NCBI GenBank assembly: GCA_021613535.1
Contig: CP075496.1
Coordinates: 15,066,001-15,130,000 of the forward strand
DNA length: 64,000 nucleotides
From: Adineta vaga
Taxonomy: Eukaryota; Animalia; Rotifera
Reading direction: 5' to 3'
The notes beneath the pieces were generated by a model that was not told the origin of the DNA, ran no database searches, and saw nothing but the letters and a program-made list of their open reading frames with translations. Shown piece by piece: positions 5-63,549 of this stretch (position 1 is the first letter of the stretch; each line of letters opens with the position of its first letter). A program made the position numbers and the translations under genes.

Positions 5-1657
5 TTAACATAAATTTAAAAGAATATTTAAAGTAAATTTTCCATCACCAGTCACAGCAATATCAATCTTTCCATCAAGATTAAAATCTCCTGTTATAAT
101 TGCAACAATATAAGGATCAGTTTGTAATGTTTGATAATGAATAAATGTTCCATCTTGATTATTTAATAAAATATGAATAAAATGATCATAATTATTTGAA
201 ACAATAATATCAATAAATGAATCATTATTTAAATCAGCAACAGCAACTGGTATCGGAAGACCATTAATATAATATGAATGACGTTTATAAAAATTTCCTT
301 GTCCATCATTAAATAAAACTTCGACTGTTGATGAACCATGATTAGCAGTAATAATATCAATAAAAGAATCATTATTTATATCAGCAATTGTTATTCCCCA
401 TGGTGAAATTCCAGTTGAATATGTTTTTCTAGGTTTAAAAAAACCTTTTTTATCATTTATATAAATACTAATTGTATTATCACTATAATCAGTAACAACA
501 AAATCTAAATAAGAATCTTGATTAAAATCTGCAATTGATACAGCTGTACAATCATGACCAGCTTGATACATTATTGAATAATTAAATGATAAATTATGAT
601 AATCATAGAAAATAGTTACAGAAGAATCATGATCATTAACAACAACAATATCTAATAAAGAATTTTTATTAAAATCTTCTATATCAAGCCAATATGGATA
701 ATATTCAATTGGATCATTTCCAACTAAATATTCTTTTATCGAACTAAAACTTCGATTTCCATTATTAATTATAATTCCAATTGTACCAGTATAAAGAAAT
801 GATATTATTATATCAAATTTATTATCATTATTCATATCTTTAATAGTTACATAAACAGGATTTTGAGGAGTTCGATATATAATTGCTGATTGAAATGTTC
901 CATTTCCGATACCATAATAAAATCCAACTGCACTTTCTCCTCGAAAAATAACAGCAATATCAAGATAAAGATCTTCATCTATATAACCAGTACTTAATGA
1001 CCAAGGAGTATTTCCAGTTAAATAACTTGAATAATTTGAAAATTGTATTGGATTACATAAAATAACTAAAAGAATTTTTTGATTTAATTTAATTATTAAA
1101 ATTAAAATTAAATTAATTACTTTGAGATATATTCTTTATTGGAATTGATGGTGTTACTAAAGAAATTTATTTTAATTATTTTCTTTTCGTCTTCACTTAC
1201 TTTCTGTTGAATTTAGTTTAATTTCAGTTGTTTTTTTAGATCTTTTTGAAACAATTGTTGTTTCTAAAAATAATTATCATTATAATACTCTTCTGTTCGA
1301 ATTCTCTCACTATAATTGAGGGTGTGTGAGTATTAGATAGTTAAAATATACACATGTACATCCTCAAGATTGATGTATAATTTTTGAAGAGATTTTAAAA
1401 AAATGAATATTCTTACCGATATTATATTTCGTATTATTGACAAAAAAAACTGCTTGAATACGAAGAAAGATAATGACAATAATAATACTAATAAAGATAA
1501 ATATTGGTATTATAAAACAACTCCAAAGAAGAAATCGAGATCTTTTTGATATAGGATTTTCTCTTCAATAAATTTATATTTTAAAAAAAATATATATTAA
1601 TTCAATAGTTAAGTATTACTTTGAAGACAATATTTCTTCATTTGATAATTGTTCCAT
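5..1657 (-). CDS. Type II membrane protein with C-terminal FG-GAP/VCBS repeats (multi-exon; last exon ~1066..5)
   Basis: Repeated DxNxDxxxDI motifs (DFNQDSYLDF, DINNDSFIDI, DLNNDSFIDI, DFNLDGKIDI). The frame extends upstream of the ORF call (ILCNPIQFSNYSSYLTGNTPW). Small upstream exons encode MEQLSNEE..., a hydrophobic TM and a Thr-rich stalk, separated by GT-AG introns. Confidence 0.8.
1316..1367. repeat. Telomere-repeat-armed palindromic cassette (intronic copy)
   Basis: TTGAGGGTGTGTGAGT-spacer-ACACATGTACATCCTCAA(GAT). Confidence 0.7.
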
Positions 1658-2399
1658 TGATATTCATATACTTATGAAATATATTTTCTTGAAAGTGACG
1701 AAGTATAGATCAGTAAAAACTTAATTACAGAAATTGTTAATAACAAATAAGACTTTCTTTTGCATAGACACTTTTTTTTCTTTTTTAATTTTTAAAATTA
1801 TTTAATATCAGACAAGAAAAAGAAGTGTTATTCACTCAAATAATTGTTTTTCTATTATACTGATGAATATAATCAATGTATTTCTTTATATTTGTCTTTA
1901 TTTAATAATCAATTGATCTTCGAAAAAAGATCTAATAACTTCTTCATTTTGAATAAGAGTCGAAATATTCATTAAATCAAAACAATTTATGATGTACAAA
2001 AGATATTCATATAGTGTTACATTTTTCACTGATAAATAATTTTCTTTTTTCTATAATTTAGTAAAATCTTTTTCAATAAACATTTTACTCACTCATTTCT
2101 CTTATTTTAATTAATATTTCTTTTTCTTTTTTTCCAACAAAAAAGACTAAAATACTATATATATATATATAGATCCGATAGTTTCTTTTGTTCCATTTTC
2201 AGATTGTTGTTTATTGTTATTATGATCAATTTACAGAAACTTATTAAACATTTTGCTCTATTTATTTAATATTTCCTTTTAAATTAGTTCGATTATGTTT
2301 ATCAAATGAATAAATGTTTATTAAACATGTAAATAAATGAGAGTGTGTACAAAACGAATATTACATAACAATATCAATTTATATTAATTATATTTTCGA

Positions 2400-3365
2400 T
2401 TAAAATAATCTTCTATGTAAAATAATATTTATTAATTCATTTCGAAATGTTTTTGACATTAATAAATGTGCATAAGAAGTTAAACAATATGGAACATAAG
2501 TACAATAAGTTGCTAAACGAAAAATAAATTGTAATATTTGTGTATCTTCAACAGATTTTGAATTATATTGTGTCAATTGTTGATAAATAAGAAAAATTGA
2601 TAAAAATAAACTAAAAGGAACATAAATAATAATATTTATAATTAACATTAAAATAAGTTGACGATCTTTTGCTTGAATAGAAGGTAAACCAGTTCTTGTT
2701 TGTAATGATAAAGGTGTAATTGTAATATGTTTCATACGATGAACATTTTTTATTGCCCATAATCCAAAAAAGATCATTAATAAAGGTACTAAAATTTCTT
2801 TTATAAATGAACCATAACTAATTATTGTTATATAAATATTTGTTTCAGGATAACAAATAAAAGAATTTAATCCTATTTGTAAAATAGTTGAAAAAATCAT
2901 TATAGGACTTGAAGATAATAACCAAAATAATGTTCCAATAATAATTAATATAAAAGCATTTTTAATAGAACTAACTTTTCGTATATGAACATTTGATGAT
3001 GTTATTAAAACACGATCAATTGATGCTAATATTAATATAAATGGACATATACAATTAAATGAAATAGCGACATAAAGTCGTAATCGACATAAATTAAGAT
3101 TATATAAAGAATAATCAATATTAAAACCAAGTTCAAGTACTGGTGGTAATAAACCTCCAAAAATAATAATTATATTTGAAATATTAAATGCCATAAAATA
3201 AATTGAACATGGATTTTTTCGTAAATTTCTTTGAATAAATACAATAAAACTAAATATATTACTTATTATACCTAAGAATATTAAAATTGGACCACCAAAA
3301 CGAAATAAATTTTCTTCTACTGATTTTAATTTAAGAATCAAATCATAATTGATCAATGTCGACAT
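2400..3365 (-). CDS. Rhodopsin-like (class A) GPCR, 321 aa
   Basis: 7 hydrophobic segments, LRKNPCSIYF, C-x-LRLY, ASIDR (DRY-like), SKTFR in helix 8. Confidence 0.88.
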   Translation of the reverse strand: MSTLINYDLILKLKSVEENLFRFGGPILIFLGIISNIFSFIVFIQRNLRKNPCSIYFMAFNISNIIIIFGGLLPPVLELGFNIDYSLYNLNLCRLRLYVAISFNCICPFILILASIDRVLITSSNVHIRKVSSIKNAFILIIIGTLFWLLSSSPIMIFSTILQIGLNSFICYPETNIYITIISYGSFIKEILVPLLMIFFGLWAIKNVHRMKHITITPLSLQTRTGLPSIQAKDRQLILMLIINIIIYVPFSLFLSIFLIYQQLTQYNSKSVEDTQILQFIFRLATYCTYVPYCLTSYAHLLMSKTFRNELINIILHRRLF

Positions 3366-4214
3366 TTTTATTTAAATTTCATAAAAAATAAAATCATTTC
3401 TTATTTCAAACCTTTCTTTATATATGAATTCAAAAGAAAAATGTAATTATATTTATAAACCAGGGAAAAAATTCATTAGAAAAGTTTTAAGATAATCTAT
3501 CAAGGCATTTATAAGTTCATTTATACGATAGTATAAAAAACTAAATATAGTTGGATTATAAATTCAATTATCGAGAAAAAATATCTATTTAATTAATTGC
3601 GCATATTTATTTAAAGATGAATGTAAGTATCTTTTCTTCAATCTTACTTACATTCAAACTCTTAACATCAGATTAAGTGAAGGTATCTAATGTTTAAAAA
3701 TACTTTCAATTTTCTCTTGTTGTTAGCGACATTGGATATTACTTCATGACGCTACCTTCTACATAGTTGTTTTCTTTCATTTCTATACATATATATACAC
3801 ATATATATGTATATCTTCTTTCTCTTTCTTTCCTGTCGTCTTTTGGTTTTCGTTGATTATCATGTCCGTTCTCATGATGATTTCTGTGATTGTATTTCTT
3901 CTTTTTTTTCTTCTCTTTTCTATTTTTTTCTCAGATCATCTCTGATCTATATTTATATTATTGTTTTTCTTTTTCTCTAGTCAGTCTTTTGTTATCATAT
4001 TCTTTAGTGTTTTATTTGATTTCACATCAGATCATACGTTCATATAGTTGTTCAGCTTACGATATATTCGTTAGCTGGAGATTTATCTTCATCCCCTAAT
4101 ATAAGAGACTCACACTTGTCGATTTAAATCGAATAATTTATTTAGAATGATTCAATCTGTTCATCATATAAATAATATCACATCTTCGATAATCTTTTAA
4201 CGAAACATTATCGA

Positions 4215-4269
4215 TTGAGGGTGTGTGTGGATGAAGATACAGTAAGGATCAACGTCATCCACACCCTCA
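4215..4269. repeat. Telomere-repeat-armed palindromic cassette
   Basis: TTGAGGGTGTGTGTGGATGA-20 bp spacer-TCATCCACACCCTCA. Confidence 0.75.
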
Positions 4270-4340: not shown

Positions 4341-4410
4341 TTCAGGGTATGGATGTATATGTGAGAGAGTGTAGATAATTCCTTTTAACACTCGTCACAC
4401 CCTCCCTCAA
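4341..4410. repeat. Telomere-repeat-armed cassette (degenerate)
   Basis: TTCAGGGTATGGATG...CACACCCTCCCTCAA. Confidence 0.6.
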
Positions 4411-7950: not shown

Positions 7951-8579
7951 GTAAGGTATGTATCAAAAGTTCTCAGAACTTTTGTTTTTGATCTTAAATG
8001 AGAACATTTTGAAAGCTGCTTTCAATGAACTATGCCATTAGATGCAGTGTGAAAAGCTCTATAATCTACATAAGACAATGTATTGGGTGAGCGAGCCTCA
8101 TTGATTCAAAACACACAAAATATGAAATATCGATATGAAAAAAACAAACGCGTCATGTACTAAAACAAGGTTTGTTTTACAGCATTGAGGTTTAGCTCAT
8201 TTTAGTTTTGTTATTCTTGAAAACAAAAAGCACAGTTGTAAGAAAAGCTGTGTCTTATGCAGATTGTAGAGCTTTTCACGCTACATCTTGTGGTCTGTTT
8301 TGTTTTTCTAAGATAACAAATAATTAAAGGATGAAACAACAAAAAGTGAACACATCGGATATTAGAAAAAATCGTAGTTTTCAATCGCCAAAAAATATAG
8401 TTACTAAAAATTTTGCCTCTTTTAAGAAAAAAGATGAAGTTATAAAATAAATGATCTTATGAAAATTGTAGAGCGTCTCATGCTGCATCTAATGGCATAG
8501 TCCATTGAAAGCACCTTTCAAAATATTCTCATTTAATATCAAAAACAAAAGTTCTGAGGACTTTTTATACATACCTTAC
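7951..8579. mobile_element. MITE with ~115-bp imperfect TIRs (Kolobok-like GG...CC ends)
   Basis: GTAAGGTATGTATCAAAAGTTCTCAGAACTTTTGTTTTTGAT... is the reverse complement of ...ATCAAAAACAAAAGTTCTGAGGACTTTTTATACATACCTTAC; internal TGTAGAGC repeats. Confidence 0.75.
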
Positions 8580-9153: not shown

Positions 9154-10600
<1,447 letters not shown>

Positions 10601-24490: not shown

Positions 24491-24541
24491 TTGAAGGTGT
24501 GAGTGTGGATAACAAAATATGAGTACGGTCATCCACACCCA
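24491..24541. repeat. Telomere-repeat-armed palindromic cassette
   Basis: (ATC)TTGAAGGTGTGAGTGTGGAT-20 bp-ATCCACACCC. Confidence 0.65.
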
Positions 24542-25131
24542 ACTTAGTTTTTCAAAGAAGCACTTGTATCATTTGGAAGAACAGCACTTTGAAATGTAAG
24601 TGTTACTGACAACAGTTCATCCGATAGATTTGACTAACTAAAATTAACATAAGTAAAAGTACCTCTATCAACTGTTGCATTTGTAAAATCAACATTGTAT
24701 AAGAGAGAACATAACGGAAGTTAATATATGATAATTTCATCTAAGTAAAACCGACTTGACTAAAATCAGAGAAATCTATTTCAAGGAATCGAAATGATCA
24801 TTTGATTAAAGAAACATTACGAAATTGTATTAGAACTATATCATTTCTTGGATATAAACCTCGCAGCAATCTTAAGTATATTCATATCCAAATTATTGAA
24901 TTCAATAACAAATATATTAATCAGTCAATATTCACTGTTTTTTTTCTATTCATTTTGTTTTACATAAAAATAGAATTAGTTGTCGTTTTTGTCGAATATC
25001 ATCTAGTTGAAGCGATGTTGTTAATGTTTTAGCTCGAATAATAGATGAAATGACACTAAATTCATCACACACGATGTTTTTCTCTAAAAGTAACATTGAT
25101 ATATCATGCAGATATGTAGTTAATATTCATT

Positions 25132-28089: not shown

Positions 28090-28777
28090 AAGACTAATTT
28101 CACAGTTCTACATCTATCAAAAGGGAAACGTTAACCATGAAAATCAATCTTATCCTATGTTTCTGATGTATTCCTTGTGTTCGAGTCCACAGTAAGCTGA
28201 AGTGAACCCTTAACAAACTCAAAACAGAAAACCGATTTTCACTTGAAACGAAATGCGGGAGTGAGATCATCTCCCATGTCTTCAAAATCGACCAGGTTTG
28301 GTCGATTAATCGCGATTTTCCAAAATATTAACAATTAATCGCGATTATCCGAAATGTTAACAATTAATCGCGATTGATCGCCGATTTTATAAGCAGAAGT
28401 GATATATCGCGATAGATCGTCGATCATTTTTTGATCAACAAAAAATCGGAATTTCGTAATAAAAGCTCGTCAATTAATCTCGATTGAGCAACAATTTTTA
28501 ATATTTTTACTGAATATCAATAGATCAACGATACATTTAGTTAATTATTTTTTACGTGAAGAAAATCAAATTTAAAATATAAAGTAGACTCTGGGTCGGA
28601 AAACGAACCTCTGAACTAAGTTACCGAACGCCATCTCTTCACGAATATGTTCGTATTATTTTCTGGCTGATTAGTTTCAACCAATAGACAAAGAGAGATG
28701 ATTCTAGAAGTTCTCGTATTCACCGTATGTATTTTCTTTTGTGCGGTATCCTTGTAATATTCATTTCATTTTTGAAA

Positions 28778-33562: not shown

Positions 33563-34021
33563 ATTATAAATTAACTTATGTTGTTCATTTCTCGACTTAA
33601 ACTCTTGTTGTTCGCTCATTCATTATTCATTATTTAGAAATTATCTGTATACTTTTATAAGCTCTTCTATGTTTTTATGTTTATTTCAGTCCCTTTTATT
33701 TGGTTTTTATTGTATGTCAGAAAGAATAATCGTTCTACAAGGAAGAAACATGTTTTTCGAGTGCTCAAAATGGCTTCTGCGAATTTACAATAGTTGAGAA
33801 CTAACAAAAATATATTAAAAACTGAGGAAAGTAGCTTGAATAAGTTACTCGGAATAATAAGCGAAAAATCGCATATGGATCGCGATTTGTGCAAAAATCG
33901 CCAAAAAAATCGAGAAAAATCGTTATTTTGGGCGATTTTACACGCGATAGATCTCACAAGCTATCGGCATGGTATATCGCGGTAAATCGTCGATTTTGAG
34001 GCGATTCGGGTGACATGGGAG

Positions 34022-34913
34022 GCAATCTGAGAATTTTGACGACGAGCAAAGTGGTTCAGAAATAGAAAATGATGAAATTGATTTAGAAGATCTTAAATTA
34101 CCAGAAGATTCTACACGAAAAAGCTCATACACTTCCGAGTCCTCGATGATCTGGCCGTCAATTTCGTCTACTTCAACAAAAATAAAATCTTTCAGTGATA
34201 ATATCGAGAAATTTGGACCAACCAAGCTCACTGAAAATATTCTACCTGTCAAAGACGCATTTATTTGTCTTATGTCGGAAAAATCCTACATTAAATTTTG
34301 ATTTATTCAAATATCGAATATGATCGAAACACTGAATTAGGCGAAAAAGAAGAAATAACAATGATAGAATTGAAAGCTTCTATTGGACTATTATTGCTTG
34401 CTGGTTTATTAGGAAGATCAAAGGGAGATTTACCATCCTTATGGAGAACAAGTCCTTTGCAATCTCCAATATTCAAAGCTCCTATTTCAGAAAACTGTTG
34501 TGACAAAATTATTTCTTGTCTAAGATTTGATGATAAAAATATACAAGGGAAGAGAAAAGCAAGCAGATAAATTTGCAGCAATTGGTGAAATTTGATCAGA
34601 TTTTCAAGATAAATTAAAAACATGTTATACGCCGGGACTTGATCTTACCGTCGATAAACAATTACTAGGATTTCGGAGAAAATGTTCATTTCATCAATTT
34701 ATTCCTAAGAAAGCTGACAAATATAGATTCAAATTCTGGCTATGTGCTAAGGCAGAGTCGCGTTATGTGTTGAATAGATTTCCTTACATTGGACGGCAGC
34801 CAGGTCAAGAAAAACAAACACACATAGGTGAAAGTGTAGTTTTAGAATTGCTCAAGCCATTTTATGGTTCAAACAGAAATGTTACAATGGATAATTTCTT
34901 TGCGAGTGTACCA
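34022..34913 (+). pseudogene. piggyBac transposase pseudogene, 5' part
   Basis: ELKASIGLLLLAG, CLRFDD, LTVDKQLLGFRRKC, FIPKKADKY, GSNRNVTMDNFFASVPL; stops and frameshifts. Confidence 0.85.
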
Positions 34914-35176
34914 TTGTGTGCATGATCTGTCCTTTGTTTATTTATATGCAAGTTCGAATAGAATAAACAACCGACTAGTACATAGACACGAAAGAGAATG
35001 AATACGGAAAAGTAAAGACAGAACGAAAGAAATAGATAGATATGATCTTAGTGTATGTATACACAGATCGCAACAACGTTGTCTTTACTTAACACAGGAG
35101 AAAATCGGATAGTTTAATTGGTAGGATAGCCGATCTCCCTTAGCAAAAAAGACGAAATCATGATCACGGTAGCTAT

Positions 35177-35206
35177 ACTCACCCACACCCTTACACACAC
35201 TCTCAA
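35177..35206. repeat. Right arm of telomere-repeat cassette
   Basis: ACTCACCCACACCCTTACACACACTCTCAA. Confidence 0.5.
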
Positions 35207-35904: not shown

Positions 35905-36637
35905 ATGATGCAAATAACTGTATTTTTATTCATATTTATCTTATCTTTATCAATAAAATGTACAACAAGTGCTTATCATGATGATGAAGAAAGATCATAT
36001 GCCTTAAGAGATCTATTCATGGATCTTTTAGAAGAAAAACGATATAATTCTGATGATAGTGATGAATTATTCAATAAAAGAGGTATAAATTAATTTTAAA
36101 TAAGAAAAGTATTTTATTTATTTTTTGAAAAGCTGCTGATACTGGTTGTCAAGATACATGTAATTGGTATAATGGTTACAAACGTGCTAATAACGGGAAA
36201 GGTTGGACTTGTTTTGAATATACAACGGTTGGTCCAGATCGAAGCGGTGCACCATGGTGTAAAGATGGAGCTGTTACAAAAGGTTCTGAATGGACATTAG
36301 GTGCTAAATATAATTATCCAGAAAAAAATTGTTGCGCCTGTGGAAAAGGTAAATTAAATTTATTCTTTTTCTCTATTCAAAAAGTTTCAAATCAATATAT
36401 CTGTTGTTTTCTTTTCTAGGTAAATGTCAAGATACACCTAATTGGTATAATGGTTACAAACATGCTAATAATGGAAAAGGTTGGACTTGTTCAGAGTATG
36501 CAACGGTTGGTCCAGATAGAAGCGGTGCACCATGGTGTAAAGATGGAGCTGTTACAAAAGGTTCTGAATGGACATTAGGTGCTAAATATAATTATCCAGA
36601 AAAAAATTGTTGTGTTTGTGGAAAACCATCAAATTAA
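35905..36637 (+). CDS. Secreted prepropeptide with two tandem Cys-rich domains (exons 35905-36082, 36133-36348, 36420-36637)
   Basis: Signal peptide, acidic pro-region with KR sites, two near-identical CQDT.NW...WC...NCC.CGK exons spliced in phase 1. Confidence 0.82.
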
Positions 36638-37518: not shown

Positions 37519-37971
37519 CACTGAAAAAAATTTTCGTAGAATAATAAACCCTCAAAAAGGGTTTATAACGGAAAAACCAGTTTATCAGCGTGATCTACCC
37601 CTTGATCAACCCTTTTTTCTTGAAAAACCCTCAAAGAGTTTATTATCAGTTGCAAACTGATAAACCCAAGGGTTGATCCTCACTTGATAAACACTTTTTC
37701 CATACATCAATTTAATCAACCCCAAAATGATGATTTCGTTGAAGACAATAATATACTCTGTGTCTAAGGGTTGATTAAATTGATGTATGGAAAAAGTGTT
37801 TATCAAGTGAGGATCAACCCTTGGGTTTATCAGTTTGCAACTGATAATAAACTCTTTGAGGGTTTTTCAAGAAAAAAGGGTTGATCAAGGGGTAGATCAC
37901 GCTGATAAACTGGTTTTTCCGTTATAAACCCTTTTTGAGGGTTTATTATTCTACGAAAATTTTTTTCAGTG
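37519..37971. mobile_element. CACTG-ended MITE (CACTA family): 204-bp TIRs, 45-bp spacer, AA target-site duplication
   Basis: Arms 37519-37722 and 37768-37971 are reverse complements with no mismatch seen; flanked by AA on both sides. Confidence 0.92.
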
Positions 37972-40205: not shown

Positions 40206-40662
40206 TTGATGTTTTTTCTAAAAAAAGAAAAGAAATGAAAATTTTTATTTAAGATTTACTTCTAAGTTTTCGTAATGATTAGAATAATGTTAATAAATAT
40301 TCAGGATTAATATGCACACATGACGAACATTCAAGTCAGTGCACTTTTGAATTTGGAGGATCAAAGCTGAAAAATAAGCAAACTGAGAAAAATAAAGAAA
40401 AATAATTAGCGTTTGTTTAATTTATTATCGATTTGTAGCAACTGGACATATTCTGCTTCAAGAGGTAGTTGTGGAGGTGGTTTTTGAAACAACATTGGAT
40501 ATATATTATTCGGTGGATTCGTTGTACGATTTTGAGTAAATAATGGTGGTTGATTAATTGATTGCTGTCTTATAACTTGATATTTCTGATGTTGGTGAAG
40601 AATGCGTGCAATTAAAAAATCACATGGTTTTAATCTAACTTGACAGATACAATAATGTAATA

Positions 40663-41904
40663 TTAGGTTGTCAACAAAGTTTTGGCGTTTTTTTCAAAAA
40701 TTTTATTTTTCTTTTTTCACTTCAAAAGTACAACTAGTTTTCAGATATATATTTACCATTACTATCTACCACTTGTCGCCAACGTTCTGGCACAGAAATG
40801 ATCCCGCGCTCGTAGAAGTCCTGGGATTTTTCATCAAAGAACTTGACAAGCTCCGTTTTGACATCGCTTTCGTCTTTGAACTTTTTATCACGTAAATCAT
40901 TCGAAAGAGAACGAAACAAATGGTAGTCTGTTGGAGCCAAGTCAGGAGAATAAGGTGGATGAGGAACCGTAATCCAACCAACCTTCAATAATTTTTCACG
41001 GGTCAACTTTGCAATGTGTGGTCTTGCGTTATCATGTAAAAAATAAACTCGATCCTGCTTTCCTTTAAGTTTCTCTGCAACCCGATCCAATTGTTCACAG
41101 TACAGATCAGCAGTGATGGTGTAACCATTTCGTAGAATTTCCCGATGAATAACTTCTTTAATACTCCACCAGACACTCAGCATCAACTTCTTAGGATGTG
41201 GATCAGTCTTCGGTGTTGCTACGCCTGCTTGACCAGTGCTCAACCACTGACGTCTACGCGTGTAATTAACATACAACACCCACTTCTCATCGCTAGTAAT
41301 CGGATTGGATAACCATTGACAGTTGCGATGAGATGTGATTAAATCCATACATGTATCAACTCTCTGTTGCAGTTGATGTGACGATAATTCATGAGGTATC
41401 CATATTCCATATCTCCATGTCTTGCCTAATTCTTTCAGATGTTTTTCCACCGTAGTATGAGAACACCCAAGCTGCTCTGCTAAACACCGTAAAGTCGATC
41501 GAGGATCTTGTTCGATAAGCTGCTTTAGAAAATCCACATCCAGTTCCATTGGTCGACCGGATCGAGGTACATCGTCAAGTTCTAAATCCCCATTCTTGAA
41601 ATGATTGAACCAACGTTGCACGGCACGAGTGGAGGCTAGATCCTGACCCGTCGTACCGCATATGTTGTTGGCTGCTTGCGTTGCTTTGTGACCCAAACGA
41701 AATTCATGAAGTAAAAGCACCCGAATCTCTCAATGAGAAAGATTTATTTCTGATTCGACATCAACGTCCATATCGATGATTTTTTTATCATTCGAAAGAC
41801 GTTCATGTCCTATATATATACACTTAGTATGGAAACTTCTAGAACTTTCTAGGTTATTCTACAAGATTTTAGAAAAAAACGACAAAACTTTGTTGACAAC
41901 CCAA
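40663..41904 (-). mobile_element. mariner (D,D34D) transposon, full length, TA TSD
   Basis: TIRs TTAGGTTGTCAACAAAGTTTTGGCGTTTTTTTC / GAAAAAAACGACAAAACTTTGTTGACAACCCAA, flanked by TA. Confidence 0.95.
40734..41771 (-). pseudogene. mariner transposase with an early in-frame TGA (41732-41730)
   Basis: WIPHEL, TSDEKW, HDNARPH, YSPDLAPTDYHLF; ATG at 41771 is followed by MDVDVESEINLSH*. Confidence 0.88.
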
Positions 41905-42490
41905 TATTTGAAAAGCTAAAAAAAATGTAACAAAAATCAGTGCTACGTCACGCCAGTCATTGAGTCGTGGTGCAACATTTGTTTGATTACTACTGGGAAA
42001 ATGTTTTTGAATAGTATTGTTCATAATGCTATTGTTGATGACTTTTGTAATGGCAATTTTGTTCTCTTCTATCATAGTCCTATGATCATTGATTGTCGCT
42101 TGGATTGCACGAATATCATTTGCAGCAGTAAGATCCCGTTTGTTTCGTGATTCATTATTATATGCTGTGTGAGATAAATAGTAAATTGTTGAATGAATCT
42201 TGATAAAAAAAATATTCATATAATAAAACTCACCTTTTTCAGTAACTAAAATTCCAATCGAATAAGAAAGAAAAATATCCGAAATGAAGAATTGGCACAA
42301 CATGACATGAATTCAGTGGAAATACTATGATAAAATCAACCAAAAATAAAGACAATGCAAATAAATATATTGATATTCAATGGAGAATGTTCAATATGTG
42401 TATCGTAACAAAAGACCTTTACGAATGATTCTCAACGATCATGAATCTACATTTATACAATCGTCATAAAAAACAGATGTGATAAAGATA

Positions 42491-42570
42491 TGTGTGTGGG
42501 TGCGGTTGTGGGTGTCGGTATGAATAAGTGTTAGTAATAAGAAAAAACCTACCCACACCCACACCCACCC
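42491..42570. repeat. Telomere-repeat-armed cassette
   Basis: TGTGTGTGGGTGCGGTTGTGGGTG-spacer-ACCCACACCCACACCCACCC. Confidence 0.7.
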
Positions 42571-42574
42571 TTTC

Positions 42575-43579: not shown

Positions 43580-46500
43580 TCATGTATTGCAAGTTGAAAT
43601 GACTTCAACACGTCTTGTTTTCCATTTTTGAATAAAATACATAATTATTTTAACTGTATGTGGCACAACGAGCTTAAGAACTGTTGATAAACCACCTACA
43701 ATACCAATCAATATTGTAGTAACATAGATTGGAGAGTTTTTTTTCACAGCTATATAACGACATTGATTTGGTTGACATTCATTATAATATTTCTCGTATA
43801 TTGATGTTCCATTCCATTCTTCAATCATCAATCCATTTAAGAGATCGGCAATTGTTGCTGTTTGTGAATATCGAATTGAAGATAATGCACGAGGAATTAT
43901 CTGATTTGTTGATTGAGATGATGATGATAATAAATAACCATTTAATTCATTAATACATGTTTGATTATAAAAACATTGAAGATTAGACTGAAGTAATGAT
44001 TCTATTGATAAACAACCAAAATAAAATCCAGGTATGTTGAAAACTACTATTGGTATTATATTTGAATATTGATAAATAGAAGATTGAATTATACATTGAA
44101 AACTTTCATCACAACTACAATTTGAATAAGATGATGATCGTGTAGTTATTTCACTATATCCTGGTAAAATAAATAACCAATAATTCATTTCAATTGCCGA
44201 ATATAAAGCATTTGCTTTTGTTGAACTTCGAATTAGATTTAATGATAATAAAAAACTCTTAATTGTTAATAATCGAAAATTATTAATAAATGATTGAGTT
44301 TGTAATTGAAATAATAATTGAGGAATAAGAGATACAGTAACATATTGAGTTGATTTAAATTGTATTAATCGATAAGATATTGTATCTTGAATAAGTTTAC
44401 AAAATGAATTTAATGTTTGAAAAGAATTTAATCCTGATCTTCGAAAATCAGCTATATAATAACTTTCATTATTGTAATGAGCAAAATAAAGAGACCAATT
44501 GTTTGAAAGAAAAATACTATTACATATTTCATGTAATCTATATTGAATATCAAGAAATTTATCATAATTAATTGAAATATGTTTACAAGGACATAAAAGA
44601 CTTTGTGAATACATTGAATATAATTGAATATAATCGTTAATAGTAGGTTTTTCGATAATAATTGTCTGTTGAATATCAATTAATGATGAAAAGAAGAATA
44701 AAATTATTAATATTATAATAAATAAAAGAATATATAATCGTGTAGATATTCTTTGATTATAAAGTTTATGTTCATTAATTGATGGTGGAATAGATGGAAA
44801 AAGATTTAAATTTTTCAAAAAAATTTTCAATTTATATAATAATATTAAAAATTTTTCTTTTTTTCTTATCAATTCTAAAATATAAATATAAACATATTTA
44901 TATAATCTCGAAGAATTTCAATAAACACTTACGAATATTTGTCTGTGAAAGTTGTTTCTTCTTTCGAATAAATCTTATAATTATTGGTATAATAAATTTA
45001 AATACTGTTGTTAAACCACCTATCACACCAATCAATGTTGAAACTATAGAAATTAGATTATTTTTTGTTATAATTATGTAACGACATTCATTCGGTTGAC
45101 ATTGATTAAAGTATTTATCATAATATCCTGATCCATTCCATTTTTCTAACATTAAATTCTTAATAAGATCACTAATAGTTGAATTTGGAAAATATTTACT
45201 TGATAAAGATGTTTTAAGAGCTTTGAATTTTAATGAAATTAAAAATGATGATGATAAATAAACTTGAAATTGATCGATACATGTTTGATTATAAAAACAT
45301 TGAAGATTAGATTGAAGTAATGCTTCAATTATATAACAACCATAATAAATACCTGGTATTGTAATTAATATATTCTTATTCAAATAATCATAAATAGAAG
45401 CTTGTGAAAAACAAGTACCTGATTCACTACAACGACAATCATCATAGAAATATTCTTTAGTATTTACTAAATAAGATTGATTTGAAGCGAATAATAAAGA
45501 ATAGATTTGTAAACCAGAAAATAATCTATTTGCTTGAGTTGTATTACGAATTATATTTAATGTTAATATAAAACTATTTGTTATTGATATTCGAAATTCA
45601 TTAATATATAATTGAATATGTAATTCAAATAATTCTTTAGATACAACATTTGCACTTATATAACGATTTATATTCAATTGAATTAAATTATTTGAAATTG
45701 TGTTTTCAATTAATTTACAAAATCCACGTAATGCATGAAATGTATATTTACCAGTTACTTGAAAATCTTCCATATAATATGAACCTTTACCTTGAAGATA
45801 TTTTATCCATTCATTAGTAATAAATATACTATTACATATTTGATGCATTGTATATTCTATAGATATTAATTTATCATAACTAATAGAAATTTCATTACAT
45901 GGACATATAAGATTTGATGAATATTTATCATATAATTGTAAATATTGTTTAAAAGTTGGTTTTGAAATAATAATTATTTTTTCAATATTAATTAATGATG
46001 TATATAAAATGAGAATAGTTATACTTAAAATAAATATAATGATAAATATTTTTGTTGATATTCTTTGAGTTTGAAGTTCATATTGATCAATTGATGGTGG
46101 AATTGATGGAAATAGATTATATTGAATACAATATCGTTTGAATTTTAAGAATATATTTTTTTTACATAAAATTTCTGAAAAATAATATTTCTAAATAGTT
46201 TAAAATCTTAACTATGTATAATATCTTACTTGTGTATCGTTGTGTTTGATCTTTCTTTTTTCGTATAAATATTATCACATATGGTACAATATATGTTAAA
46301 ACTGTTGTTAAACCACCGACAATACCAATTAATGTTAGAATTATATAAATTATAGAATTTTTTGTTACAATTATATAATAACATTGTTTTGGTTTACATT
46401 CATTATAATATCTATCATATATTAATGTTTCTGTCCATTTTTCAATCATTAATTTATTAATAAGATCATTTATAATTGTTGTTTCTAAATATTGACTTGA

Positions 46501-47469
46501 TAATGTTGAATTTAAAGCTATAAAATTCAATGTAGAAGATGAAGATATATCAAATTTGACTTGATTTATACATGTTTGATTATAAAAACATTGAAGATTC
46601 GATTGAAGTAATGCTTCAATTACAAAACATCCGATATAAAATCCCGATATAGTTATAAATATATCTTCATTTAATGAATAAATTTGAATTTCTTCAATAC
46701 ATTTAGTTGATATTGCACAATCACAATTTCCATATATTTTTGAATCTGAACTAATCCAATTATCTGTTTGTAGATTAAATTCTACATTTGTTTGTAAAGC
46801 TGAAGTTAAATGATTTCCTTGAGTTGTATTTTGAATCATATTAAGAGATAATAAAAAATGATTTGTTGTTGAAATTTTAAATTGATCAAAGAATGATTCA
46901 ATTTGAGATTTAAATAATTCGATTGATGACAAAGTTGATGTTATATATTGTGTTGAATAAAATTCAGTTAAACTATTTAAAATTGTTTTTTCAATAAGTT
47001 CACAAAACATATTTAATGCTTCAAATCCATACGACATTTGTGTTCGATAATCATCATTAACAAATAGAAAATTAGAAGATAACTTCAAAGGTAATATCCA
47101 TTCATTAGTAATAAATATACTATTACATATTTGATGCATTGTATATTCTATAGATATTAATTTATCATAACTAATAGAAATTTCACTACATGGACATGTA
47201 AGATTTGATGAATATTTATCATATAATTGTAAATATTGTTCAAAAGTAAGATTTTCAATAGTTATTATCTTTTGAATATCAATTAATGATGTATATAAAA
47301 TGAAAATACTTATGATTAAAATAAATAAAATAATAAATATTCTTGTTGATATTCGTTGAGTTTGAAGTTCATGTTGATCAATTGATGGGGGAATTGATGG
47401 GAAAAGATTTAGATTTTCAAGAAAATTTCTCATTTTATGAGAAAGCAATAAAATACGATTCATTCTCAA
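43580..47469 (-). CDS. Large membrane protein made of three tandem ~420-aa Cys-rich TM-ectodomain-TM modules (one gene, 2 introns)
   Basis: Each module has NLFPSIPPSI, LxCPC, HxICNS, CxC, GxYxGC..LLQSNLQCFYNQTC, YYNECxPxxC and IG.VGGL. Phase-1 introns at ~46229-46175 and ~44931-44875 join the modules in frame. Confidence 0.78.
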
Positions 47470-47661
47470 ATTATATCAAAACTTCAATAAAAATAAAACA
47501 ATTACTTTTTTTTCTTGTGTTTACAATAAATAGAATACTTTGTATATAGTGTGCGCATGATATAAAATATGAAGAGAAAAAATCTCATTATTTTTCATAT
47601 GAAAATATCGTTTAAATATTATTTTGAATATCTTTTTTAGAAACACTCAAATGTAATTATT

Positions 47662-47750
47662 TTGAGGGTGTGGGTGTGGGTGAGGCTGTGGAAGGGTGCA
47701 AGTCAGTGTCTTTATCCACCCACACCCACACCCACACCCACACCCATCAA
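47662..47750. repeat. Telomere-repeat-armed palindromic cassette (young)
   Basis: TTGAGGGTGTGGGTGTGGGTG-spacer-(CACCCA)5 TCAA. Confidence 0.85.
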
Positions 47751-48639: not shown

Positions 48640-48696
48640 TTAAGGGTATATGGTAAATGTATAACTATGAATAAGTAACATCCATTCACATCCTCA
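48640..48696. repeat. Telomere-repeat cassette (degenerate)
   Basis: (CATC)TTAAGGGTATATGG...CATCCATTCACATCCTCA. Confidence 0.5.
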
Positions 48697-49821: not shown

Positions 49822-49869
49822 TTGAGGATGTGAGTGATATATTTATTCATTAATCCCATACACATCCAA
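49822..49869. repeat. Telomere-repeat cassette (degenerate)
   Basis: TTGAGGATGTGAGTG...CCCATACACATCCAA(GAT). Confidence 0.55.
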
Positions 49870-50053
49870 GATTTTTAATGAAATTTTATTTATATTTGTG
49901 AGGATAAAAAGAATTGTGTGATATATTCTCATGTTTATCTGCGTATGTATGAATTTTCAAAATTTTGAATTTCAAGAGAAAATTAAGTATCATTCATTAT
50001 GATAAAGCAAAAAATAGATTTATGAGAGAGAAAAAAAAAGGTTTTTCCTCTTA

Positions 50054-54452: not shown

Positions 54453-55163
54453 ATGTGAAAATAAGAAATTTTTCCTGAGAATGTGGTTGTACCGTTTCTC
54501 ATCACTCACACTTGCACTTTCAACCAATCTAAAATACTTCACGAGGTATATGAAATTTTCAAAATGTTCATAATTGCGATCTTTACTGCTTTTTCGTCGT
54601 ATGAAAATGTTGATCATACGTGTTGAATCATTTAGTTATATACGAAACTAAAAGTAGAATGTAAATAGGCAACAGATATTTTCGATTTCTATAACTCTTT
54701 ATAGAATCAGTAAGCTTGAGTATAGTTAGTGTTTGGTCTTGGAATCATTGTTCGGAATCGCTATTAAAATAATCAAAGATCAAATATCACACTAACACCA
54801 TTCAGTTTTTGAGTTGAACTTGGTATTATACTTTTCATCTCTATACTTCCGTCGATATATTTCAGTCTCGCAGATGTCATAGGTATGTTATAAATTATAA
54901 TTAATAATTAATTAAGTAGAGTAATCTAAAAGAAGACGATCAATGATCTGTTAATAATACATGTACTATGAAATGAAAACAACTATATATTAATACTATA
55001 TGATTCAATAGTAAAATCATCATGTTGAAACAGATTATAGCAGTAAAGATAACAGAGAATTGAATAGATTAATTTAGAAAAAATAACCAGTCACTATTCA
55101 AATAGATGATCTTATTTCCGTATTGATCAGAACAATAAAATATTGTCTATTTGCATAATGAAT

Positions 55164-55223
55164 TTGAGGGTGGATGTGGGTGTGGGTGAGAGATAAATAA
55201 AATAAACACATCCACATCCTCAA
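55164..55223. repeat. Telomere-repeat-armed palindromic cassette
   Basis: TTGAGGGTGGATGTGGGTGTGGGTG-spacer-CACATCCACATCCTCAA. Confidence 0.8.
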
Positions 55224-55468: not shown

Positions 55469-55557
55469 AATCCTTTTTCAGATTAGCGTCACTAACTTTA
55501 CTCACTGACGCTAGCACTTTTCACATTCAAAGAGAGAGAGAGAGGCGAAGGGAGGAT

Positions 55558-55579
55558 CACCCACACCCACCCTCAAGAT
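55558..55579. repeat. Right arm of telomere-repeat cassette
   Basis: CACCCACACCCACCCTCAAGAT. Confidence 0.65.
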
Positions 55580-56433: not shown

Positions 56434-57233
56434 GTTTTGTATCAAACGTAATTGAAGAAATTACAGTTTGTCGATGGCTTTTATATTTCTTTTACACTTG
56501 AATTTGATGTATCACCTGGTGATATTTTTCAGCTATCACGTGATGTTTTGTTTTTTTTGAGTATCTAATTTTCTTGTGTGCGTACAAAAGAAAAAGAAAA
56601 TTACACAAGTAATCCACAACGGATAGGACAAACTAATTCCAATCAAACGAGCTTGAGCAAAGAATCAATTAAGAATAAAGCTTTGAATAAAAAGTATAAT
56701 GTTCACATACCTGCATTCAAATATAATTTCTAAGAATATTTATATATTTCCAAGGACATTTTTACACGATCGTTAGCAGAAGAACCTATGAGTATAGTTT
56801 CTCAATCATTTAATCTTCAAGAGTATTAAATTAACCCGGTAGTCTATAACGAGTTAATAAAACTAATCATAACATCAATTCATTTATCGATATTAAAATA
56901 ACAGTTGAGAGACTTACAGCATGGAGGTAGTGATGTGATTATACGATTCGTTTTGCATCCACGTTCCACACCCACCCAGTCTTTCCTATAGAAAATCCAT
57001 GATCTTACTTAGAAGATATTTCACTGGATAATATGTCATTACGAGACAAACAAAGAAAATGATTTCTATACATTTATGATCTTTCTTGACACTCTTCTGT
57101 GTCATAGAAACATATTCTTTTATTATATGATCAAGGTGATGATATACATTAGCACGAACAACAACAGCAACATTTAATTCAACATGGTCTCCTTCGATAA
57201 GCTCTGGTCTATCCTGTTCTATACGTAGCGGAG

Positions 57234-58115
57234 CTATATTCTTACCACATACCATACTTTGTAGATCATTCGTTTTAGTTCATGCCGAAAAACTTTTGAT
57301 ACAACAACAAATATGAAAAAAATAGCACAATAAAGAATACGATAAAGAAAAATACTGAAACTATTAATGAAATTATTCACTGCTTGTTGTGATGGCGTTC
57401 GAATTTTATATTGTGTGGTTGTCATATAAACGTTGTACACGTTTAGAGTAGTAGTAAACGTAATGTAAACAACATCTTGAATGAATAGACAACGAAGCAG
57501 TTGAAAATCTCTCTTTGTCATTGATCGAATTCCATTGCGTTGTTGTCGTGATATAAATTGAATATGACGAACATCTTTAAACATAATAATACACAGAGTG
57601 ACCATAATAAGAGAAAAAAGAGAATTACAAACTAGTGCAATATAAACCTTTGACTGATCATAGTAACGAGTAGAATACGAAGGAGTAAACTGTTGAATGT
57701 TTACCTTGAAAAATAAATGAGAATAGAAAACAAACCAGAAAATTGTACATATACCGATAGAAAAATATGCTAAACGTTTCGAACTATACAAACGTGTATC
57801 AATATTTTGAGAAGAAATTATTAAACGATCAATTGAAACAAGAATAAGAATAGCTGGTGAAAGTGTAGGAAGAAAATATAATATTTAGTAATAGATTTTA
57901 CAGAAAAAATATTTCTATTCAATAGATTAATACGGAGACCGGAAATAAAAATTGATGTACGTATAACTGAATTAATATAACATGTATTCAAAATAAGACA
58001 AATATTAAAATAAAAGACACAAACATTTTTTCTGCAAGCTTTTCTCGTAAACACCAACACACTTAACAATCGTATAATTAAGAGTATTTATGTAAGTAAT
58101 GTCGGAAGAGTTCAT
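57234..58115 (-). pseudogene. GPCR pseudogene
   Basis: RKNVCVFYF, SIDRL, KRDFQLLRCL, SKVFRHELK; frameshift near 57890 and internal deletions. Confidence 0.75.
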
Positions 58116-58560
58116 CGTCAACGACAAAGTATAATTAACAACGTTGGGTACTGCAATCTGTAAAGACAAAATGATATTTCTAATGAAAACACAGAAATAA
58201 TCTTTATAAAAATATAACGGTTTGAAGCACTACGAGTTTAGTCTTTCCTCTAGTCGATGATATAAGAAAGTAATAAGAGGAGATTCACTGAATTATAATC
58301 ATAATGAATACATGAATTTCTTGGTAACTATCACAAAAGAGTACGAGAGAATGGTATGCTTAAGATTATTTATAACTGTGAAAGTTTTTCCTTTTATCTA
58401 GAAAAAAAGATTTCTATAATTAAAGTTCGATTATAATATAGTTATCATTCATAATGCATTTTCATTTATTTGTGTCATAATTTCGCTATAGAAAAGAGGC
58501 AAATTTGATACAATATCTGCTAAGTAGAGAAGCATTCATTTACAATCGTTCATACTCCGA

Positions 58561-58610
58561 TAGAGTGGGTGTGAGTGTTAGATACATGTAATACCCACAC
58601 CCACCCTCAA
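58561..58610. repeat. Telomere-repeat-armed palindromic cassette
   Basis: TAGAGTGGGTGTGAGTGT-spacer-ACCCACACCCACCCTCAA. Confidence 0.8.
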
Positions 58611-60090: not shown

Positions 60091-60197
60091 AAATCTAATC
60101 TAAAGAACAAATAACGATAGTTTTATGTAAAGAGAAAGATGTCCATGTTTTTGATTGTGACGCAGTTATCGCAGTTTTTTTTATAAATAGTTGGTTA

Positions 60198-60243
60198 TTC
60201 AGGGTGTGGGTGTGGGTTAAGAGTATAGCTAGACCCAAACCCA
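60198..60243. repeat. Telomere-repeat-armed cassette
   Basis: TTCAGGGTGTGGGTGTGGGT-15 bp-ACCCAAACCCA. Confidence 0.7.
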
Positions 60244-61279
60244 GATCTACGCAAATTTCGGAAGTTTCGTTTCAAGGAAATCTGCATAGTGCTACGTCAG
60301 TTATAGACCCACAAAACCAAATCCAATGAAGTGCCTTTTTACATCGGAAATGACTTCAATTTTGGCTTCTTTAAAATATATTTTCAATATTGTATTCACT
60401 TCCAAAAGCATATATACCTACCTTGTTTATTCATTTACTTGTTAAATGAAAGGAAAGGAAAGGAAAAAACAGCGCTGCTGTTTTTAGAAATTACGTTGAG
60501 AGGTAAAAATAATGTAATGTCGCGTTTTTTTTTGCTTACATCCGAAACAAAAAAATATCTTGATGTATTTTTGTATCGTTCTTTCAACTACAAGTGTATA
60601 TTCAATATCAAGAATATTTTCATTGAAAAAAATACGGAAGATTCTTCATGATCTCTAACTCGTTGATTACATTCAATCTGATAATATGTTATAATAATGA
60701 ATAATATTTTTCGACTAACGAAAATGTTTCATTCTTCATTTCATTTTATGAACAAACTTTGTTTTATTGATACAAAAGTAACTTTCCTCCGAAAAATAAA
60801 AACATCGCAAAAATTCTCAATTATACCTGAAGAAATGATCAAAATTAATGAGACAAAACCGAAATATTTCTCTCGTTTCTTCGTCATTCATTTGTTTTTT
60901 TCTTTCGACAATAGTTTTTATATTCAAACTAGACGTTTAATATAAGACAAGAAACGATAATAAAGGTTCTGTTTTTATTAGAAAAAGAAAAAAAACAAAC
61001 TTGAGAATAATCTTCTTGATATTGTTCAATATTATACCACGTAATTTGAATTCATTCATTATTAATAGATAAGAATAAACAATATGATGTCGAATTTCAT
61101 AATAAGTTTTTAGATTAGAAATGAGGATTGAAAACTTATCTTCAATACAAACAATATCTGCAAATGTGAAAGCTTTATCTATACTGCAGAATTTTCAAAA
61201 ACAGAAATTTCAAAATAGGTATCAAAATATTGCTAACATATGCTTTGTATTTTCCATTATGAATCAACACTACAGCATC

Positions 61280-61327
61280 TTGACGATGTGAGTGACGTTG
61301 AGAAAATAATACTCACTCTCACACTTC
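61280..61327. repeat. Telomere-repeat cassette (degenerate)
   Basis: (CATC)TTGACGATGTGAGTG...ACTCACTCTCACACTTC. Confidence 0.45.
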
Positions 61328-61690
61328 TACATTCGTTTTAGTTTTTTAAAAGGCTCAACGATCAAATCGCTGTGTTTGTTATACTATTGCACCTTTCATA
61401 ATTACTCATAACTTTACTTTTGTCCTTGTCATCGTTAGTTTTTTCTTGAGAATTTTCAATTTAATACATTATATGATACATTTTTGTGATGACGATATTG
61501 CAACATAAACATATAGAATCATCTTGTTGACGTCAATGAACAAAATTCGTAGGCGAGTAGTGTTTCTTCATTCGTTACACGGCTTTCGATGAAAAATACA
61601 TTTAAACGTAGTCTTTATTTAAACTATACTCTCATCGAAAAGATATCAGATACAATCAATATAGAGAAAAAGTATTTGATTTGATTGTTG

Positions 61691-63134
61691 ATGGCACATA
61701 AAGATCATTCTGTTAATGTCCAATGGATGTGGCAATCAAATCCAAATCCATTTTTGCCAAGTGAACGAGAGGAATGGAGTAATTATTCGAAAGAATCCTC
61801 GAAAATAATTGAAAAAGCATACACAAATAGAGAATATTATGTGTCTCTATCGGGTTATATTGTGGATTTAAGAGAATCTATACAGATTAACAAGAATAAT
61901 CCAACAAGAAGAAGACCTATAAAACGAGTTGAATTTAGCAAAGGTAATTCATAAGAAAAACTTTTTTTCGTTAGAACAATAAATATTATATTTTAGAATT
62001 GTCGCTTCAATTGAAAGAAAAACTGGGCAAAGGAGCATTTGGTACAGTGTACAAAGGTACTTATTATGCATTTGAAATAGCTTGTAAAGTTATTGATTCA
62101 CAATTATCGAAAGTAACGACAAAGGAAACAAATATTCTTAAAACACTTCATCATCCAAATATTGTTCGATATATTGATGTTATTTATACATCAAAACAAA
62201 CGTTCGTAGTTATGGAATATATTGATGGAGGTACTTTGTACAATTACATTAAACAAACATCATATTCAAATGGTTATTGGATAAATACTCATAAAATGAT
62301 GATCAATATCGCTTATGCTATGAGTTATTTACATGGAAAACATATTGTTCATGCTGACTTAAAATCTGATAATATTTTATTAAAATCAAATAATGTTGCA
62401 GTTCTTTCGGATTTTGGTCTTTCAAAGATCATCAAAGAAACAGCAATACTATCCAGTAGTGGAAATACAGGTAATAATCATATTTCATAGAAGAAACTAT
62501 TTTTGATTGTATTGAATTTATTTCAGGTGCTATAAGATGGCTTTCGCCTGAACTTTGTGCCAACAATCGAGAACGATCTTCGTATATGTCTGATGTTTGG
62601 GCTTATGGATGCGTTTTATTGGAAATAATAACAAAGAAAGTACCTTGGGAAGATATGTTTGAAAATATGTATGATCTTATGGATGCTCTTGCTCGTGAGA
62701 AGAATGCAAACATATTTGAAAAATTTTGTTATAATCAAAATGCACCTGATAATTTTCATAAAATGCTTCGTTCTTGTTGTGCTTGGTCAAGAAATAATCG
62801 ACCTAATTTCGTAAAAATCATCAAAGATTTTCATGAATATACAAATACAACTAATTATACTCCGATTCAACATGATATGACTTTTCATAAACCTACAGTT
62901 TCACATTTTCAACGACAGCCATCTGCTCATACTCGTCCTCAAACATCTTCAAGAAGAAATTATTATCAAGAAAAAAGTTATCGTTCAAGTAAAATTTTAT
63001 ACGATTCGGAAGAAGATGATACTCCTCATGCACGTTATCCTAGAACGACATCACACTATATATTTTCACGAAAGACATATGATGATGATGATGATGATGA
63101 GGAGGAGGAGGAGGAGGAGGACGATGTTTATTGA
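61691..63134 (+). CDS. WWE domain + protein kinase (TKL-like), 3 exons
   Basis: WMWQSNPNPF...W..YS...IIEKAY...RPIKR (WWE); GKGAFG, IACK, HADLKSDN, DFG, RWLSPE, SDVWAYG; acidic tail. Confidence 0.88.
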
Positions 63135-63377
63135 CAGAAAATGTACAACGAAATAAATGTTGATTGGCATGAAACGTGAAAATAGAAAAAAATAATATAA
63201 AACAAATTTCGTGACAATTTTTATTCTTTTTTGATAAAAAATATAGAAATTCAATTCTTATGTCATTGTCAATGACGTAAAATATGCACTTTTATTTCGA
63301 AAAATTTCGTTACATATTTCACGGATAGGAATACAATGAAATGTTTTGTTGATGCATATTTATTATTTATACTTTAT

Positions 63378-63470
63378 TTAACCCTAGTCCATCCAAGATG
63401 AGTCATTTTTGACCCAGTCATAAAAATTTGGGAATATACTATGATATTTTGGTAGTTTCTAGTTTAAGGG
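63378..63470 (+). mobile_element. piggyBac-like terminus/mini-element
   Basis: TTAA|CCCTAG...GAGTCATTTTTGACCC; similar TTAA|TCCTTT...GACTCATTTT end at ~59332. Confidence 0.4.
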
Positions 63471-63482
63471 ATCTTTATCATC

Positions 63483-63549
63483 TTGAGGGTGTGGGTGTGT
63501 GTGTGTGTGTGTGAATGCAACAGACTCTCATTCACACCCACACCCTCAA
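63483..63549. repeat. Telomere-repeat-armed palindromic cassette (young)
   Basis: (CATC)TTGAGGGTGTGGG(TG)nAATG-spacer-CATTCACACCCACACCCTCAA. Confidence 0.85.

Follow-up and report, generated by a model that had tools for sequence, protein, structure and literature searches.

Short interstitial telomeric sequences (ITS) in vertebrate genomes are inserted at break sites, an activity attributed to telomerase (Nergadze et al. 2007, PMC2246262; Sola et al. 2021, PMC8537989). Some of them, the TERC-ITS, carry sequence reverse-transcribed from telomerase RNA, and head-to-head repeats occur in 3 of 41 vertebrate loci, for which a second telomerase on the other side of the break has been invoked; one Xenopus locus combines head-to-head repeats with an RNA segment immediately next to the template (PMC8537989). 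Among bdelloid rotifers, Adineta vaga has TGTGGG as its telomere repeat, and Philodina roseola has TGAGGG and, as a variant, TGTGGG (supplement to PMC7943196); an earlier note on the DNA studied here likewise names both hexamers as bdelloid telomeric repeats. Bdelloid subtelomeric DNA is known to contain short telomeric stretches (PMC2861651; PMC8494291), and a 2026 proposal for A. vaga places telomeric repeats at deletion breakpoints, with transient neotelomeres 'leaving only scars' (PMC13564844). Here, a 64,000-nt stretch of DNA (contig CP075496.1, positions 15,066,001 to 15,130,000 of the forward strand; hereafter the window) is described which carries a dispersed family of small inserts, called cassettes, in which a G-rich and a C-rich arm of telomere-like repeats face each other across a spacer, and which may be the scars of breaks capped at both ends by telomerase and then re-joined.

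The cassettes resemble vertebrate ITS in that short arrays of the host's telomere repeat stand at internal positions, with no target-site duplication (TSD) and with unique spacers of 10-38 nt at the junction. They differ from ITS and TERC-ITS in that the head-to-head arrangement is the rule, that a putative template-edge signature stands on both arms, that local density reaches 1 per 2-5 kb, and that the host is a bdelloid. The vertebrate loci are a rare precedent. Head-to-head telomere fusion relics, such as human 2q13, also consist of two arrays whose G-strands point at each other; these are single long degenerate arrays with subtelomeric flanks and mark changes of karyotype, unlike the cassettes, which have 1-5 repeats per arm and number more than ten in 64 kb. 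With the subtelomeric stretches and proposed neotelomere scars of bdelloids, the cassettes share the TGTGGG unit, the genus, a setting in transposon-rich rearranged regions and a presumed relation to the healing of broken ends. Paired inward-pointing arms with a TTGAGGG start and unique spacers were not found described in the texts that were searched, among which the 2007 Athena paper was not.

The telomere-repeat cassettes listed in the earlier note were recovered at their positions, in numbers far above chance. The window holds 27 telomere-like 12-mers (at most 2 mismatches) vs 0.34 in Markov shuffles, 14 exact copies of TTGAGGG/CCCTCAA vs 1.9 expected, and 8 two-armed cassettes detected by a weight matrix whose training arms all came from loci of other species, vs 0 in shuffles. 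Combining the weight matrix with a fuzzy-hexamer detector gave ten robust cassettes (Table 1); a relaxed, composition-only detector was dropped as too noisy, having caught a repeat inside paralogous genes in one of the comparison loci (L125). These ten belong to the thirteen two-armed copies originally listed, the other three (48640, 49822 and 61280) being decayed and only plausible as cassettes. The same grade applies to the two copies listed as weaker, 54476 and 56921, the first of which is not separable statistically from background. Two of the listed single arms (35178 and 55556) are real, whereas the third (32728) is intronic in appearance and has no start signature. Inward-facing telomere-repeat arms around a spacer are thus confirmed, but the idealised layout was too clean: the regular expression offered with it, TTGAGGG(TG[TG]GG)+.{5,40}(CC[CA]CA)+CCCTCAA, has 0 matches in the window, because the arms are degenerate. 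Inserts measure 50-90 bp. A uniform rate of one copy every 4-5 kb does not describe them either, since copies are clustered: nine to eleven of them lie between 42 and 64 kb and three between 1 and 4.4 kb, the intervening 38 kb holds a single one, and some 21-kb gene-dense bdelloid loci have none.

For comparison, loci were fetched around homologous genes, amounting to about 300 kb of bdelloid DNA. Cassettes number 3-6 per ~20 kb in Adineta steineri (L120, L133-L136) and 3-4 per ~21 kb in A. vaga (L122, L123); none was found in a gene-dense 21-kb A. steineri locus represented by four assemblies (L125-L128), in one A. ricciae locus or in one Rotaria locus. The feature is real and specific to, at least, Adineta-type bdelloids. 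Across 596 Gb of bacterial and archaeal genomes the strict two-armed pattern returned two GC-rich bacterial hairpins, and viral contigs returned none; a single 15-nt arm searched in metagenomes gave matches that are almost all bacterial and due to chance. The bacterial hairpins lie in Azospirillum brasilense (L137, 693-732) and in the cyanobacterium LEGE 07170 (L138, 6946-6982 and 7801-7850). Their 13-nt stems match the start of the rotifer arms exactly (TTGAGGGTGTGGG...CCCACACCCTCAA), and the cyanobacterial one is present in two copies less than 1 kb apart, much as in a small family of palindromic repeats; the likeness is taken as coincidence.

Over the 8 strict window cassettes and those of the A. 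steineri and A. vaga loci, the polarity is always G-arm then C-arm, by over 20 to 0, the lone C-then-G case being two neighbouring cassettes. The outer ends are conserved past the hexamer, as TTGAGGG ... CCCTCAA, and among the TGNGGG hexamers TGAGGG stands outermost in 20 arms and has an internal place in just 2, while TGTGGG is internal 20 times. A T occupies position -1 of TGAGGG in 13 of 14 arms and ATC positions -4 to -2 in ~45%, so that the outer conservation tapers and has no sharp end. Arm length ranges from 12 to 47 nt and shows no correlation between the partners of a cassette (rho 0.13); unequal repeat numbers of the two arms had been noticed before. Spacers have 33% G+C and, among dispersed copies, are no more alike than shuffled ones. 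The statement that they are never shared is right for such dispersed copies, but not for local tandem duplications of ~600 bp in A. steineri, whose spacers are shared; a transposition reading of the latter was rejected in favour of these duplications. No consistent TSD was seen in the 11 cassettes with both ends defined, as the earlier note had also observed. Predicted hairpin stability ranges from very strong (47662, 63483) to none (48640, 24491, 61280), with z from -6 to +0.9.

Of the readings considered, the one with most support is that the cassettes are scars of breaks that telomerase capped at both ends before they were re-joined; we judge it about evenly balanced whether this is so. The 3' end on each side of the break would be extended by a reverse transcriptase, most likely telomerase, on an RNA template reading 5'-CCCACACCCUCAA-3', with the start sometimes a few bases further 3' (GAU). 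One full pass over this template would write (ATC)TTGAGGGTGTGGG, after which the terminal GGG would re-align on the central CCC and only TGTGGG would be added. The two short caps would then be fused to each other through a filler of 10-38 nt, giving G-arm, spacer and C-arm, and the insert would be inherited, decaying neutrally toward A/T. Enzyme, template RNA, break and joining step are all read back from the product; within it, TTGAGGGTGTGGG is the exact complement of RNA 5'-CCCACACCCUCAA-3', and the position-specific TTGAGGG start fits a reverse transcriptase entering a fixed RNA template. Re-alignment that adds only TGTGGG would confine TGAGGG to the outer edge and leave the repeat numbers of the arms independent, and a start further 3' on the RNA would account for the frequent ATC. 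Extension of both 3' ends would set the G-strands with their 3' ends inward, and no other arrangement of two such extensions fits. The joining of caps with filler would yield a unique spacer, independent arm lengths and no TSD.

The symmetry of the cassettes could also have arisen if telomere repeats were added on one side only and the first arm was then copied in reverse by snap-back or template switching, the palindrome being born as a mirror image. Some stems do reach non-telomeric bases (GGATGA/TCATCC at 4215, GTGAATG/CATTCAC at 63483), and similarity is higher between the arms of one cassette than between those of separate cassettes (9.37 vs 8.57, p 0.036), a marginal excess only. However, the GGATG variant is common in many arms, so that shared variants are expected by chance; moreover, arm lengths are uncorrelated, an outer start signature on both arms would need the flank to be copied too, and, 63483 excepted, flanks are not inverted copies past ATC. 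Snap-back is therefore considered quite improbable.

Inverted ends conserved in three Adineta species, small size and an intergenic position near genes, in a window which also holds other transposons, would suit a very small non-autonomous DNA transposon, i.e. a miniature inverted-repeat transposable element (MITE) or mini-foldback, with a fixed terminal inverted repeat (TIR) end ATCTTGAGGG and telomere-like subrepeats, moved by some transposase. Foldback elements, too, have arms made of variable numbers of subrepeats. Unlike such elements, the cassettes have neither a constant-length TSD nor shared internal sequence, and neither a sharp terminus nor, in the loci examined, a partner transposase, and their arms fall far below the hundreds of bp of Foldback. 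Near-perfect arms around unrelated spacers in dispersed copies are unexpected of copy-derived elements, the outer end varies (TGAGGG, TTGAGGG or ATCTTGAGGG), arm lengths are independent, neither the window nor the comparison loci revealed a longer element that ends in this way, and a comparison of four A. steineri assemblies found no presence/absence polymorphism. A transposon of this kind is thus unlikely, and the earlier description of the cassettes as unlike a MITE holds on three counts, namely the absence of a TSD, the absence of internal similarity and the independence of the arms. Mariner was rejected as a source of the cassettes, the TIRs of the window mariner being unrelated to the arms. 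A cleaved palindromic target, TTGA|TCAA, was discarded as well: the 8-mer is only ~2-fold enriched, the longer palindrome is absent and there is no common site context.

A. steineri lineages with a flank divergence of ~6-11% have orthologous cassettes in common, which occupy corresponding positions and enclose the same spacers. The arms of these cassettes have changed by substitutions and hexamer-size indels, and the TGAGGG start of one cassette is deleted in one lineage; most mismatches to the canonical repeat go toward A and T. Three cases could be aligned cleanly, and in them arm divergence is 0.114, 0.298 and 0.083 vs 0.057, 0.113 and 0.112 in the flanks. Since the arms diverge at the flank rate or faster, they are not under purifying selection, and the likeness of arms across the family must therefore come from how cassettes are made.

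Cassettes sit in intergenic DNA or in introns of doubtful gene models, and the regions bearing them are rich in lineage-specific gene families and transposons. Six of 12 cassettes in annotated loci lie at most 200 bp from the end of a coding sequence (CDS), on 5' and 3' sides, vs 21% for random intergenic positions (p 0.024), and three window cassettes stand 186-199 bp upstream of an ATG. Such placement, together with roughly one cassette per intergenic region in the gene cluster at 42-64 kb, is what a functional cis-element under selection would show, whatever its origin: a gene boundary, insulator or terminator made up of paired sites at which a telomere-repeat-binding protein or a GT-box zinc-finger protein would bind, or a hairpin RNA. 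Orthologous copies kept across A. steineri lineages favour it further, as do the well-preserved cassettes upstream of the orthologous G protein-coupled receptor (GPCR) gene in both the window and A. vaga. This gene is the only one that the window has in common with the A. vaga or A. ricciae loci, the neighbours being different, and because arms decay fast, the GPCR-upstream cassettes are probably independent events at a favoured place. Against selection stand the divergence of the arms, the lineage without the start motif, the many copies lacking hairpin stability and the loci of A. steineri, A. ricciae and Rotaria that have no cassette; the gene-dense ones among these mean that the cassettes are not a general gene-boundary signal. 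A structured RNA is further disfavoured by arms which match their own partners barely better than random partners, and by the lack of any Rfam family in the window, where no tRNA gene was detected either. A selected element is improbable on this evidence.

Several points weigh against the scars of two-sided capping. An empty site was sought in four A. steineri assemblies, seven wild contigs, the duplicate contigs L120/L121 and a self-comparison of the window, without success; at the A. steineri locus that was compared, the four assemblies have every cassette in common, and the seven wild contigs, of another locus, are identical, so that no cassette-sized presence/absence difference was found in either set. 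No spacer was seen to be copied from nearby flanks, as templated filler would be. A conserved terminal sequence is equally expected of a TIR, the closeness of cassettes to CDS ends could reflect function or insertion preference instead, and locally, at up to 1 per 2 kb, cassettes are orders of magnitude denser than vertebrate ITS. Break repair in A. vaga has been described as faithful. Finally, the template 5'-CCCACACCCUCAA-3' is itself deduced from the cassette sequence. Of the telomere-fusion proposal made in the earlier note, support was found for telomere identity, polarity, start signature and the distinction from an ordinary MITE, but not for a part for Athena or for even spacing. Nothing in the sequence points to Athena, whose 3' end would presumably place conserved sequence at the spacer-facing side of the arms, where none appears. 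To connect the cassettes with breaks from desiccation or radiation is speculative. The reading as telomere repeats inserted at break sites, in a two-sided form distinct from an ordinary MITE, has partial support.

The capping model makes a prediction that reaches beyond the window, namely a telomerase RNA template with 3' flank of CCCACACCCUCAAGAU in Adineta and of CCCUCACCCUCAA in Philodina and Rotaria. A wild bdelloid locus of 32% G+C carries one-sided arms, TTGAGGGTGAGGG, which are telomere-like runs of the TGAGGG type and may be the product expected of a TGAGGG-type template. This locus (L139-L145) is represented by seven metagenome contigs from different samples, which agree nearly base for base and look like a widespread clonal lineage. 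Tentatively, and with the balance tipped a little against it, we propose that Adineta genomes hold thousands to tens of thousands of two-sided telomerase scars (a figure scaled from the local cassette densities), whose edges would spell 5'-CCCACACCCUCAA-3' plus GAU, and that a one-base change of the template turned TGAGGG telomeres into TGTGGG telomeres.

Structural differences adjoin cassettes in a small sample of A. steineri comparisons. L133 differs from L134/L136 by an indel of ~3 kb, which is situated between the NHL and RING-LRR genes, contains a Kelch-repeat gene and has its breakpoint ~55 bp from the C-arm of a cassette; a 27-bp indel directly abuts the outer edge of the neighbouring cassette.

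Table 1. Cassettes, decayed candidates and single arms of telomere-like repeats in the window, in order of position (ORF, open reading frame)
Feature	Position (nt)	Sequence and hairpin	Context and detection
Robust cassette	1316..1367	G-arm TTGAGGGTGTGTGAG, AT-rich spacer, decayed C-arm ending CATCCTCAA; hairpin weak, z -1.5	Weight-matrix pair; between FG-GAP gene 8-1135 (minus) and GPCR gene 2403-3365 (minus)
Robust cassette	4215..4269	TTGAGGGTGTGTGTGGATGA, 20-nt spacer, TCATCCACACCCTCA	850 bp upstream of GPCR ATG at 3365
Robust cassette	4341..4410	TTCAGGGTATGGATG ... CACACCCTCCCTCAA	70 bp from the 4215 cassette
Robust cassette	24491..24543	TTGAAGGTGTGAGTGTGGAT ... ATCCACACCCAAC	186 bp upstream of ATG 24305, UDP-glycosyltransferase gene (minus)
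Repeat run	32728-32750	(GGGTGT)3; no start signature	In apparent 54-nt intron (GTAAG...CTCTAG)
Single C-arm	35178..35206	CTCACCCACACCCTTACACACACTCTCAA	~250 bp past truncated end of piggyBac-like transposase remnant
Robust cassette	42489..42571	GTGTGTGGGTGCGGTTGTGGGTG ... CCCACACCCACACCCACCC; no TTGA start	186 bp upstream of ORF starting 42303 (minus)
Robust cassette, best preserved	47662..47750	TTGAGGG(TGTGGG)2..., 23-nt spacer, (CCCACA)4-5 CCCATCAA; hairpin -29.4 kcal/mol, z -5.1	199 bp upstream of first tandem transmembrane-family gene (43583-47475, minus)
Decayed candidate cassette	48640..48696	TTAAGGGTATATGG ... CCATTCACATCCTCA; no stable hairpin, z +0.9	Not detected by strict scans
Decayed candidate cassette	49822..49871	TTGAGGATGTGAGTG ... 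CATACACATCCAAGA	Fuzzy-hexamer detector: G-arm only
Weak decayed candidate	54476..54524		Not separable statistically from background
Robust cassette	55164..55223	TTGAGGGTGGATGTGGGTGTGGGTGAGAG, spacer, CACATCCACATCCTCAA	Both detectors
Single C-arm	55556..55579	CACCCACACCCACCCTCAAGAT, full end signature	Left side purine-rich, no clear G-arm
Weak candidate	56921..56978	Decayed G-arm, clear C-arm CCACACCCACCCA	
Robust cassette	58561..58610	TAGAGTGGGTGTGAGTG ... CCCACACCCACCCTCAA	Upstream of GPCR gene 56989-58229 (minus)
Robust cassette	60198..60245	TTCAGGGTGTGGGTGTGGGTTA ... GACCCAAACCCAGA	
Decayed candidate	61280..61331	TTGACGATGTGAGTGACG ... CTCACTCTCACAC; hairpin z -0.7	360 bp upstream of protein kinase gene 61691-63131 (plus)
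Robust cassette	63483..63549	ATC-TTGAGGGTGTGGGTG(TG)n ... CACACCCACACCCTCAA; hairpin -23.8 kcal/mol, z -6.0	350 bp downstream of kinase stop codon

The window has a G+C content of 27.5% and carries FG-GAP, NHL, rhodopsin-type GPCR, UDP-glycosyltransferase and kinase genes. The closest relatives of its proteins, at 50-65% identity, belong to Adineta steineri, A. vaga and A. ricciae; judged by these relatives it is bdelloid rotifer DNA of the Adineta kind, and the bdelloid origin supposed earlier is borne out by the three species. On the minus strand at 43583-47475, three tandem transmembrane-protein genes with a period of ~1.3 kb are 73-78% identical and form part of a bdelloid-specific family without a Pfam domain; bdelloid proteins and environmental (metagenome) sequences include well over 100 of its relatives. 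At 36129-36634, two 201-bp copies (93.5% identical) code for a cysteine-rich module, C..C.W...GKGWTC...GAPWC...CC.CGK, with no Pfam match.

Transposon fragments of mariner, piggyBac-like and Transposase_21 type are present. The mariner element (40659-41908) has 46-nt TIRs of the TTAGGTTG... type, 91% complementary, and a transposase ORF on the minus strand (40737-41729) with HTH_48 and Transposase_1 domains. The piggyBac-like remnant (34014-34922) covers profile positions 113-220 of DDE_Tnp_1_7 and stops abruptly, with a telomere-like C-arm beyond the truncation (Table 1). An ORF of Transposase_21/DUF1258 type, possibly of the KDZ kind, is followed by several same-strand ORFs (28727-32778). 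A perfect 204-nt inverted repeat at 37519-37971, with 100% complementary arms, 45 nt between them and CACTG...CAGTG ends, resembles a foldback or MITE-like element of recent formation and bears no relation to the telomere-like cassettes. An inverted repeat of 134 bp (7951-8084 and 8446-8579; 88% identical, 360 bp between the arms) may be another element of this type.

Bdelloids survive massive chromosome breakage, and the transient neotelomeres proposed in 2026 are hard to catch. Whichever origin is right, the TGTGGG hexamer counts by which bdelloid genome papers gauge 'telomeric repeats' would need re-reading, and a transposon or boundary element built from telomere repeats, if that is what the cassettes are, would also be new for rotifers. 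If instead they are two-sided telomerase scars, they would give a sharp, falsifiable prediction of the telomerase RNA template, and their sequence would serve as a tag for new events after irradiation or desiccation. The cassettes would then constitute a genomic record of past breaks, which could be mapped in existing assemblies against genes, chromatin and rearrangement breakpoints.

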